This document shows, piece after piece, positions 2,410 to 64,000 of a DNA stretch of 64,000 nucleotides. The notes under the pieces were generated by a model. That model saw only the letters and a list, made by a program, of their open reading frames with translations, was not told the origin of the DNA and made no database searches. The DNA comes from Saccostrea echinata. Its lineage: Eukaryota. The stretch spans positions 5,146,001 to 5,210,000 of the forward strand of contig NW_026889806.1 in NCBI RefSeq assembly GCF_033153115.1, given 5' to 3'. How positions within the stretch are numbered: the stretch's first letter is position 1; every line of letters starts with the position of its first letter. The position numbers and the translations under genes are program-made.

Positions 2410-3522
2410 ATGGTTTTTAGATGGTAACCTAGGAGACTGTTTATTTGGTACATATGTTATGATTTTTAGATGGTAACCTAAGAGGCTGTTTATTTGGTAT
2501 ATGTGGGTTTTTTTTTTTTAATTTTTAGATGGTAACCTAGGAGACTGTTTATTTGGTACATGTGTTTATGGTTTTTAGATGGTAACTTAGGAGACTGTTA
2601 ATTTGGTACATGTGTTTGACTTTTAGGTGGTAACCTAGGAGACTGTTAATTTGGTACATGTGTTTGACTTTTAGATGGTAACCTATGAGACTTTTTATTT
2701 AGTCCATGTGTTAATGGTATTTATATGGTAACTTAGGAGACTGTTTATTTGGTACATGTGTTTATGACTTTTAGATGGTAACTTAGGAGACTGTTAATTT
2801 GGTACATGTGTTTGACTTTTAGATGGTATAAACCTAGGAGACTGTTTATTTGGTACATATGTTTTTTTTATTTTTAGATGGTAATCTAGGAGACTGTTTA
2901 TTTGGTACATGTGTTTATGACTTTTAGATGGTAACCTAGGAGACTGTTTACTGGTATTTGATACAGTGTTTTATTTTATTTTTAGATGGTAACCTAGGAG
3001 ACTGTTTATTTGGTACATGTGGGTTTTTTTATTTTTAGATGGTAACCTAGGAGACTGTTTATTTGGTACATGTGGGTTTTTTTATTTTTAGATGGTAACC
3101 TAGGAGACTGTTTATTTGGTACATGTGTTTATGGTTTTTAGATGGTAACCTAGGAGACTGTTTATTTGGTACATGTGTTTATAGTTTATAGATGGTAACC
3201 TAGGAGACTGTTTATTTGGTACATGTGTTTATGGTTTTTAGATGGTAACCTAGGAGACTGTTTATTTGGTACATGTGGTTTCTTTTATTTTTAGATGTTA
3301 ACCTAGGAGACTGTTTATTTGGTACATGTGTTTATGGTTTTTAGATGGTAACCTAGGAGACTGTTTATTTGGTACATGTGGTTTCTTTTATTTTTAGATG
3401 GTAACCTAGGAGACTGTTTATTTGGTACATGTGTTTATGGTTTTTAGACGGTAACCTAGGAGACTGTTTACTGGTATTTGATACACGTGTTTTATTTTAT
3501 TTTTAGATGGTAACCTAGGAGA
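2410..3522 (+). repeat. ~50-bp tandem array (~22 copies) containing a splice acceptor and exon start
   Basis: Unit TTTTAG|ATGGTAACCTAGGAGACTGTTTATTTGGTACATGTGTTTATGGT. The last copy is the real acceptor of exon 3507-3588. Confidence 0.95.
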
Positions 3523-3588
3523 TGACAGTGAGGAGGAGGAAACAGTGATGCTGAATCTGGATGAAGTCAAATCAGAAAACCCCCTCAA
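3507..3588 (+). CDS. EXOSC9: penultimate coding exon of probable EXOSC9
   Basis: ttttag|AT GGT AAC ... CCC CTC AA|gtaagt; 82 bp of unique purine-rich sequence between two arrays. Confidence 0.7.
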
Positions 3589-5029
3589 GTAAGTTACATC
3601 ATAGAGCATATATACAGTCTAAACAAGTAAGCCCTCAAGTAAGTTACATCATAGAGCATATATACAGTCTAAACAAGTTACCTCTCAAGTAAGTAACATC
3701 ATGGAGCATGTATACAGTCTAAACAAAGAACCCCTCAAGTAAGTTACATCATTGAGCATATATACAGTCTAAACAAGTAAGCCCTCAAGTAAGTTACATC
3801 ATAGAGCATATATACAGTCTAAACAAGTTACCCCTCAAGTAAGTAACATCATGGAGCATGTATACAGTCTAAACAAAGAACCCCTCAAGTAAGTTACGTC
3901 GTAGAGCATATATACAGTCTAAACAAAGAACCCCTCAAGTAAGTTACATCATAGAGCATATATACAGTCTAAACAAGTAACCCCTCAAGTAAGTTACATC
4001 ATAGAGCATATATACAGTCTAAACAAAGAGCACCTCAAGTAAGTTATGTCATAGAGCATATATACAGTTTAAACAAAGAGCACCTCAAGTAAGTTATGTC
4101 ATAGAGCATATATACAGTTTAAACAAAGGACACCTCAAGGAAGACAGGTCATAGAGCAAGTATACAGTCTAAACAAAGAACATCTCAAGTAAGTTACATC
4201 ATAGAGCATATATACAGTCTAAACAAAGAGCACCTAAAGAAAGTTACGTCATAGAGCATATATACAGTCTAAACAAAGAGCACCTCAAGTAAGTTACGTC
4301 ATAGAGCACATATACAGTCTAAACAAAGAACCCCTCAAGTAAGTTATGTCATATATATACAGTCTAAACAAAGGACACCTCAAGTAAGACAGGTCATAGA
4401 GCATGTATACAGTCTAAACAAAGAACTCAAGTAAGTTATGTCATAGAGCATATATACAGTCTAAACAAAGATACATCATAGAGCATGTACATGCATGTTC
4501 AAACAAAGAACACCTCAAGTTAGTTGAGACATTCTTTTAAGTGTAGATAGGGAACCTGTCAAGTTAATTGTATCATAAAAGTGTAGTTAGAGTATATGTA
4601 TTACAATCAGAGAACTGATTTATAAAGTGTAGATGTAATTCAGCTTACCTAGACCTAATGGTTAACATGTATCTGTTTTCACTGATGCTTAGCACATCAA
4701 TCAAATCCTCTTCTTAGTTTAGATGAGTCCTTCTGATGACCCTAATAAGCTACACTTGAGTCTGTAGGTAGACTGTAGTCGGCTGGTTCCCTGTGTAACC
4801 AGCACAAGGAGATATGTCAATTTTCACATTTCTGTTCAAAGCTGCTATGCACTTTATTTTACTGTTAATACAATTAATGTGCCAATGCTTGGTTATGCTA
4901 ACTGCAGATGTACTCGCAGAAAAATGTCAGAGCTCTTTCTCTTTTGTTTTAAGGAAAGAGACATCACCAGTAAAGGAGAGGAGCCTTCATACAAACAAGA
5001 AGAAGAAGAAGAAGAAAGGGAAAACCTGA
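3507..5029 (+). CDS. EXOSC9: 3' end of probable exosome complex component RRP45 (last two coding exons; 5' part outside window)
   Basis: Exons 3507-3588 and 4954-5029 splice in frame to GNLGDDSEEEETVMLNLDEVKSENPLKKETSPVKERSLHTNKKKKKKKGKT*. This resembles the DSEEEE-hydrophobic motif and basic tail of vertebrate EXOSC9 (recalled), and the gene is convergent with cyclin A. Confidence 0.65.
3578..4525 (+). repeat. 50-bp tandem array (~19 copies) containing exon end and splice donor
   Basis: Unit AACCCCTCAA|GTAAGTTACATCATAGAGCATATATACAGTCTAAACAAAG. The first copy is the real donor at 3589. Confidence 0.95.
4954..5029 (+). CDS. EXOSC9: last coding exon of probable EXOSC9
   Basis: cttttgttttaag|G AAA GAG ACA ... 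KETSPVKERSLHTNKKKKKKKGKT*; phase matches the upstream exon. Confidence 0.7.
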
Positions 5030-5051
5030 ACAAACTTCACAGTCAAACTTA

Positions 5052-5298
5052 ATCAGTGTATATAGATCATCGTAATAAACATTGAACGGACATCACAGTA
5101 GTCGTCTTTATCAGTGTATATAGATCATTGTAATAAACATTGAACAGACATCACAGTGGTCGTCTTTATCAGTGTATATAGATCATTGTAATAAACACTG
5201 AACTGACAATAGTCGTCTTTATCAGTGTATATAGATCATCGTAATAAACATTGAACGGACATCACAGTAGTCGTCTTTATCAGTGTATGTAGATCATT
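5052..5298 (+). repeat. ~58-bp tandem repeat in 3' UTR carrying AATAAA (left part)
   Basis: Unit ATCAGTGTATATAGATCATTGTAATAAACATTGAACGGACATCACAGTAGTCGTCTTT; AATAAA at 5074, 5132, 5190, 5243. Confidence 0.9.
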
Positions 5299-63242: not shown

Positions 63243-63348
63243 CTATCATCAAAGCAAAGTTTTATGTCATTATGAATAACCCTCAGCTAAATACACACAG
63301 GTCATGTAATTTGTTTGAAAAAGTATTAAACAAATGTATATTCATATA

Positions 63349-63524
63349 CAGTTGAACTTCAGTATCTCGAACACCGATATCTCGAATACCATAGATATGT
63401 TGAAGTGATTTAGTAGTCCAAGCCACTTATTCTTGGAAGTATTTTACTCTCGATATCTCGAATCCTCTGATATCTTTAAGTTTTTTCTCGGTCCCATCCA
63501 GTTCGAGATAACAAGGTATGACTG
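63349..63524. mobile_element. pogo/Tigger-like MITE
   Basis: TA|CAGTTGAACTTCAGTATCTCGAAC ... GTTCGAGATAACAAGGTATGACTG|TA. Confidence 0.6.
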
Positions 63525-63604
63525 TATGTCAAAACATACATTATTTTCAATAACTAGTTAAGTTCTCATGATTCTTATTTACATAGATAACTAATTATGT
63601 TGAA

Positions 63605-64000
63605 TCTGGTTTACCTGGATGACTTGTTATGGTACACTTTGACTTACCTGGATTGACTCAGGTAGAGTTTGGTTTATGTTGATGACTTGTAATGGTACAT
63701 TGTGACTTATCTAGATTGACTAGTGGTAGATTTTGATTCACCTGGATGATTTATCATGTTACATTGCGACTTAACTAGATAGATTTGTGGCAGAATTTGA
63801 CCTACCTTAATGACTTATGGTAGATTTTGACTTACCTAGCTGATGTATCATGGTACATTGTGACTTTCCTAAATGACGTATTATGGTACATTTTGACTTT
63901 CCTTAATGACGTATTATGGTATATTGTGACTTACCTAGATGATGTATTATGGTATATTGTGACTTATCTAGAGGACGTATTATGTTACATTGTGACTTTC
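63605..64000 (-). repeat. ~33-bp tandem array running off the window edge
   Basis: Unit GACTTACCTAGATGATGTATTATGGTACATTGT; more degenerate toward 63605. Confidence 0.85.

Follow-up and report, generated by a model that had tools for sequence, protein, structure and literature searches.

Minisatellites whose repeat unit spans an exon-intron boundary have already been described, both in amphioxus, where they are called "mirages" and are known from Adh3, troponin C, the globin genes BflGb6 and BflGb9, and PGBD5 (PMC3087553, PMC3902484), and in humans, where boundary-spanning variable number tandem repeats (VNTRs) occur in F7 intron 7 (37 bp), CBS intron 13, the interferon-induced gene 6-16, LMNB2, and PDGF (PMC1557585). 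The mechanism that generates the amphioxus arrays was stated to be unclear, and it was proposed that introns can change by way of them (PMC3087553, PMC3902484). Here we describe arrays of this kind in a 64-kb stretch of the genome of the mollusc Saccostrea echinata (contig NW_026889806.1, positions 5,146,001 to 5,210,000; hereafter the window, numbered from its first letter), chiefly in the gene encoding RAD50. Each array is local, its unit either straddling an exon-intron junction of the host gene or, in three cases, adjoining one; the spliceosome uses the exon-side copy; and once seeded, the arrays grew as ordinary minisatellites.

RAD50 lies on the minus strand, extending from approximately 31.9 kb to beyond the 64-kb end of the window. 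Its relatives were retrieved with one conserved exon and then mapped back exon by exon using tblastn, with the exons at no point joined. The resulting matches run in collinear order, starting at 63256 with residue 112 of a gastropod RAD50 and continuing to the last exons near 31966; the nearest named relatives come from the gastropod Batillaria, the annelid Owenia, and Octopus. Exons 57020-56954, 51617-51522, and 47022-46965 are backed by collinear matches with gastropod and octopus RAD50, the first of them corresponding to gastropod residues 283-305.

Tandem arrays in the window were located with Tandem Repeats Finder (TRF), and both strands were then read directly. This recovered, at the same positions, all of the arrays listed in an earlier note made from the sequence alone, and reading bore out their anatomy. 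Four of the seven long RAD50 arrays consist of copies of an exon end together with its donor. The array at 39440-41808 comprises 40 copies of a 62-bp unit, in which ~43 nt of exon end are followed by GTAAGTCTG, and lies 3′ of exon 41956-41809. A second, with 47 copies of a 35-bp unit (55314-56953), carries ~20-28 nt from the end of the exon, followed by GTTAGTG (TTGAAG/GTTAGT, where the slash marks the junction) and lies 3′ of the exon ending at 56954. The remaining two are a 45-bp (27+18) array at 46460-46964 (AAAGT/GTAAGT), 3′ of exon 47022-46965, and a degenerate array of ~20 copies with a 30- to 36-bp unit at 36625-37260 (CTGAAG/GTAGGG), 3′ of exon 37386-37261. When the copies of such arrays were put in register by wrap-around alignment to a consensus unit, the exon end and the GT were found in every unit of these four, of the donor array in a second gene of the window, and of two further arrays from randomly chosen regions of the genome (both described below).

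The other three RAD50 arrays adjoin a splice site and contain no exon sequence, leaving gaps of 2, 3, and 4 nt to the donor, the AG, and the exon, respectively. A 28-bp array (37688-38100) begins 2 nt past the donor of exon 38276-38103. At 51628-52498, 24 copies of a 37-bp unit amplify the pyrimidine-tract region and stop 3 nt before the AG (51625-51624) of exon 51623-51522; the AG is present in 0 of 22 copies, and it is the pyrimidine tract that was copied. The third, with a 59- to 61-bp unit and a total length of ~315 bp (33786-33940 and 35278-35436), stops 4 nt short of its exon (33781-33642, minus strand, located by tblastn). This last array is split at ~34000-35270 by a mariner-like element with inverted ends of ~30 nt and a plus-strand open frame of 233 amino acids (34319-35020). 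The element sits inside the array, indicating that the array is the older of the two.

The positions of these arrays depart strongly from chance. All seven long non-transposon arrays in RAD50 have an edge no more than 5 nt from an intron end, for which the joint probability under random placement within their own introns is ~7 × 10^-12, and simulations produced more than five terminal arrays in 0 of two million trials. The statement of the earlier note that nearly every long array outside transposons is anchored at a processing signal therefore holds throughout this gene. Exon-end-plus-donor arrays are found at 4 of the 29 RAD50 donors. In the seven introns that bear such arrays, 50-85% of the length is array sequence, the upper figure coming from the 45-bp array, which fills 85% of the 593-bp intron 3′ of exon 47022-46965. 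These introns have thus been lengthened by their arrays, as anticipated by the suggestion that such repeats provide a route to intron expansion.

To these positional data can be added evidence on splice-site use. Transcript contigs were compared with positions 36400-42300 of the window. In three of the runs, spliced contigs delimit exons 41956-41809, 38276-38103, and 37386-37261, all bordered by canonical GT-AG; they connect 41809 to 38276 and 38103 to 37386, and the next exon ends at 37261. At 41809, 38103, and 37261 the splice site used is the exon-side copy, as had been proposed for every array; at the other junctions this assignment rests on protein collinearity. The assembled transcripts at these three exons use authentic sites only, and contig depth over the arrays is zero in all four runs. 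An in-frame stop lies 0-82 nt beyond each RAD50 donor, so that any use of a spare donor would introduce a stop codon into the transcript instead of producing a variant protein. We saw no case of junction sliding, in which a spare copy had turned into a used site.

Contigs from one run, designated X10, carry a different organism code and are ~91% identical in the exons, and they pass both exon borders at 37255-37398 and at 41801-41966. One of these contigs stops ~11 nt into the intron after donor 37261, and the other continues for 159 nt with no match to the window's array at 90%. Running as they do a few nucleotides past exon borders, the X10 contigs appear to be genomic.

A second gene in the window, on the plus strand, displays the same organization on both sides of a single exon. 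An 82-nt coding exon (3507-3588) is predicted from its single open frame and AG/GT borders, and this frame carries on into a last exon at 4954, with a stop near 5026. The predicted exon is bracketed by 21 spare acceptors upstream and ~18 spare donors downstream. The acceptor array (2410-3506, plus strand, 50-bp unit) contains TTTTTAG and the first 16 nt of the exon in 22 copies including the real one; the AG is in place in 19 of the 21 spares, and the real acceptor (3507) is the last copy. The donor array (3581-4525, plus strand), also with a 50-bp unit, carries CTCAA/GTAAGT, and 14 of its 16 full spares retain GT. A third array in this gene has a 58-bp unit comprising the end of the 3′ untranslated region (UTR) with its AATAAA, and begins ~20 nt past the stop codon. 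It is divided by a 3.3-kb insertion into two parts (5048-5297 and 8647-8891), for which TRF reports a common unit in rotated form. A perfect 51-bp repeat (2.1 copies) and identical (TTA)n runs (5296-5424 and 7619-7647) occur near the start of, or within, this insertion.

The internal structure of the arrays reveals how they grew. In the 62-bp array, near-identical pairs of units recur at fixed distances of 24 and 5 units, and in the 35-bp array at a distance of 17 units, which indicates growth by duplication of multi-unit blocks, the pattern left by unequal exchange or replication slippage. Copies at the two ends of an array, exon-side and far-end, rank among the most diverged from its consensus. 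The arrays thus show concerted evolution in their interiors, from which the edge copies are excluded. Similarity to the real copy was also tested against distance from the exon, and no gradient was found; this, together with the divergence of the exon-side copies, argues against repeated one-way re-copying from the exon.

We also searched four array units against the whole assembly (923 Mb, ~34% GC). These units match their own locus only, or else weak low-complexity stretches at 67-80%: every match to the 62-bp unit falls inside its own locus, the units of the 37-bp array (51628-52498) and of the acceptor array (2410-3506) are unique in the genome, and the 28-bp unit (37688-38100) finds just weak low-complexity matches elsewhere. 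For these four, the proposal that each array arose independently in situ and does not represent a transposon family is sustained, and a transposon-borne satellite is rejected as their source on the grounds that none has dispersed loci. Dispersed repeats are present nearby: related 147-bp units at 513-1040 and 38427-39128 belong to high-copy families, the second forming an internal tandem of the dispersed repeat at 38340-39330, over which all four runs show a contig depth exceeding that of the flanking exons by a factor of hundreds to thousands.

The remaining features of the window can be described briefly. No array is present in Cyclin A (~15.5-18 kb, minus strand), as had been reported. A short array (18 bp × 4.2, 47618-47693, minus strand) lies 17 nt downstream of the donor at 47708, in an intron of ~140 bp. 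At the window's end, a 33-bp array with a CAG/GTAAGT unit occupies 63602-64000 on the minus strand; the exon that presumably seeded it lies beyond the window, a correction to the earlier account. Long open frames (295, 254, 202, 178, 181, and 365 amino acids) on the minus strand between 21788 and 27000 resemble one or two copies of a retrotransposon lacking long terminal repeats.

Outside the window, we sampled four random 50-kb blocks of the genome (200 kb in total). Both of the long short-period arrays in this sample consist of an exon end plus donor: one has 11 copies of a 51- to 52-bp unit, and the other has 14 copies of a 60-bp unit in an exon encoding a myosin-like coiled coil. In the latter (contig C10, 1013310-1014132), the authentic donor, GTCAAA, is weak and most of the 12 spares read GTTAAA, such that choice of the first site there is not explicable by donor strength.

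Genome-wide, we counted short motifs that recur three times, at a spacing of 15-45 nt for the donor heptamer GGTAAGT, using the reversed motif as the control. GGTAAGT gave 1533 matches versus 247 for its reverse, and AGGTGAGT gave 359 versus 226. The composition-matched control TGGAGAT gave 368, and its reverse, TAGAGGT, gave 1957, a total driven by a dispersed 33-bp satellite family; a few large or dispersed satellites thus dominate such match totals and render them unreliable. When distinct loci on the largest contig (C1) were instead counted by hand among the matches listed, GGTAAGT was represented by 18 and the three controls by 5, 7, and ~11, with about half of the listed control arrays themselves bearing a donor-like motif as judged by eye. 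The acceptor-like octamer TTTTCAGG showed no genome-wide excess in periodic arrays (42 matches versus 70 for its reverse). These counts agree with the junction pattern but are noisy, and we regard them as suggestive. The 33-bp satellite, whose unit starts TAGAGGTAGGTAGC, is found at C1:47610569-47616097, C2:29463245-29469602, and C3:687755-688982; on the first two of these contigs its arrays are paired in opposite orientation at a distance of a few kilobases, which suggests that it is a transposon-borne array.

The reading that we consider probable is that these arrays are non-adaptive, boundary-spanning minisatellites of the mirage type, and that their excess at junctions results from biased seeding combined with a filter. 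Duplication would begin near exon or processing-signal DNA as a consequence of biased seeding, and a duplication that started in an exon would survive only if it carried the splice site along, whereupon splicing would remove all that follows the first donor or precedes the last acceptor. Once seeded, the arrays expanded by block duplication, with their edge copies escaping homogenization. Arrays would be tolerated because the exon-side site wins, and as passengers they would cost some wasted transcript, less so where the nearest spares have lost GT. They would be a main source of length in the introns that carry them.

Several observations weigh against this reading. The interiors of introns exceed junction neighborhoods in size by tens of times and yet contain almost no long non-transposon arrays here, so that neutral straddling is insufficient and the seeding must be biased. 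The three arrays without exon sequence fall outside the argument from exons and a filter. A search of the other 25 RAD50 donors for a two-copy "seed" found none, and the seeding step itself was thus not caught. Finally, contigs drop rare isoforms, and low-level use of spare sites is therefore compatible with the data.

Next in standing is junction-targeted mutation, in which germline breaks or stalled synthesis at exon-intron borders would be repaired by template switching that duplicates sequence across the border. Such damage could arise where RNA:DNA hybrids end, where the polymerase pauses at splice sites, or at the edges of exonic nucleosomes or methylation. The junction excess, too great for random placement, is what this explanation predicts, the same pattern recurs across unrelated genes, and donor junctions, acceptor junctions, and one 3′ UTR/poly(A) site have all been hit; moreover, arrays that merely abut a splice site fit a position-based cause better than they fit a filter. 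The absence of seeds at the other 25 RAD50 donors counts against it, however, as does the lack of an array in Cyclin A, which presumably is also expressed in dividing germ cells, and a process governed by position alone should act at both junction types, whereas the acceptor-like octamer shows no excess. In sum, the abutting arrays favor a border-targeted process and the apparent donor bias favors an exon-plus-filter origin. Thus, of the junction-targeted duplication process put forward in the earlier note, the junction excess stands, but the data do not separate targeted damage from other causes, and we judge junction-targeted mutation to be possible though clearly the less probable account.

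More tentative still is a broader proposal, that a germline process specific to exon-intron borders in this lineage, such as nicking at the edges of transcript:DNA hybrids, seeds duplications genome-wide, and that it may also act in amphioxus, which is likewise a broadcast spawner of high heterozygosity. If true, junction minisatellites would be a main driver of intron growth.

It is improbable that the arrays are maintained by selection, either because spare donors recruit U1 to counter premature polyadenylation or to boost transcription, or because they permit regulated unproductive splicing. This idea draws on the AT richness of the introns (65-70%), on the stop-containing transcript that any use of a spare would produce, and on the retention of GT in 110 of 133 full spares (14/16, 28/38, 8/9, 36/46, 12/12, and 12/12 in the individual arrays). 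Because the arrays are young and homogenized by block duplication, however, intact GTs need no selection. Donor columns are conserved no better than their neighbors (0.90-0.98 versus 0.84-0.95 for other columns, in a comparison of low power among non-independent copies), and in the two largest arrays the GT columns score slightly lower than the rest (0.855 and 0.859 versus 0.886 and 0.930). Splice-signal positions thus show no conservation above background of the sort that a selected decoy array would display. The nearest spares in these two arrays are in fact disabled, with AT in place of GT in spares 2-3 of the 62-bp array and GT missing from spares 3-5 of the 35-bp array. Acceptor arrays and an abutting pyrimidine-tract array devoid of AG occur as well, and the authentic sites alone appear in assembled transcripts. 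The suggestion that the arrays were selected as intronic decoys for U1 or U2AF accordingly finds little in its favor, and it is less well supported than either account of seeding.

Assembly artefacts, or transposon-carried satellites that landed beside exons by chance, are very unlikely given that the units carry the adjacent exon's own sequence, that the four units searched are single-locus, and that copies differ by 5-20% with structured higher-order patterns unlike those of collapse or expansion artefacts, even though the window's other tandem arrays, those with 147-bp units, are dispersed repeats.

The reports on amphioxus left the mechanism of junction nucleation open, and a genome where such arrays are common would permit a statistical rather than an anecdotal test. 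The loci also constitute natural experiments in splice-site choice, in which the exon-side site prevails over competitors that bring the number of near-identical donors to as many as 47, or of acceptors to 21, and they illustrate intron growth from the ends. On a practical level, gene predictors and short-read assemblers will be led astray by arrays of this type.

Compared with the amphioxus mirages, the arrays described here are alike in having a unit that spans the exon-intron boundary, in occurring as 5′ and 3′ types, and in preserving normal splicing, and the amphioxus units, at 10-160 bp, cover the range observed here (PMC3087553, PMC3902484). Concerted evolution within the array, from which the cluster edges are excluded, is likewise shared (PMC3087553). 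They differ in belonging to another phylum, in reaching 40-47 copies, and in the presence of several arrays in one gene and of one exon bracketed on both sides. Haplotypic and somatic length instability is a feature shown in amphioxus. In the literature that we searched, we found no account of junction minisatellites in molluscs or on a genome-wide scale.

There is also a partial resemblance to the model of Rogers, in which tandem duplication occurs across AGGT proto-splice sites. As far as that model is set out in the amphioxus report (PMC3087553), it too has duplicated splice signals creating sequence that is spliced out, but here no new intron arises, and existing introns are instead lengthened from their ends.

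The human VNTRs resemble these arrays in that the first monomer spans the exon-intron boundary, and the identical pseudo-sites that follow the authentic donor are largely silent, the most upstream site being chosen (PMC1557585). In a few of the human loci the first one or two pseudo-sites are used. The human examples are isolated loci of 5-25 copies, whereas in Saccostrea echinata the pattern recurs across genes and fills at least half of each affected intron. It is this density of junction arrays in a single genome, rather than their kind, that is notable.

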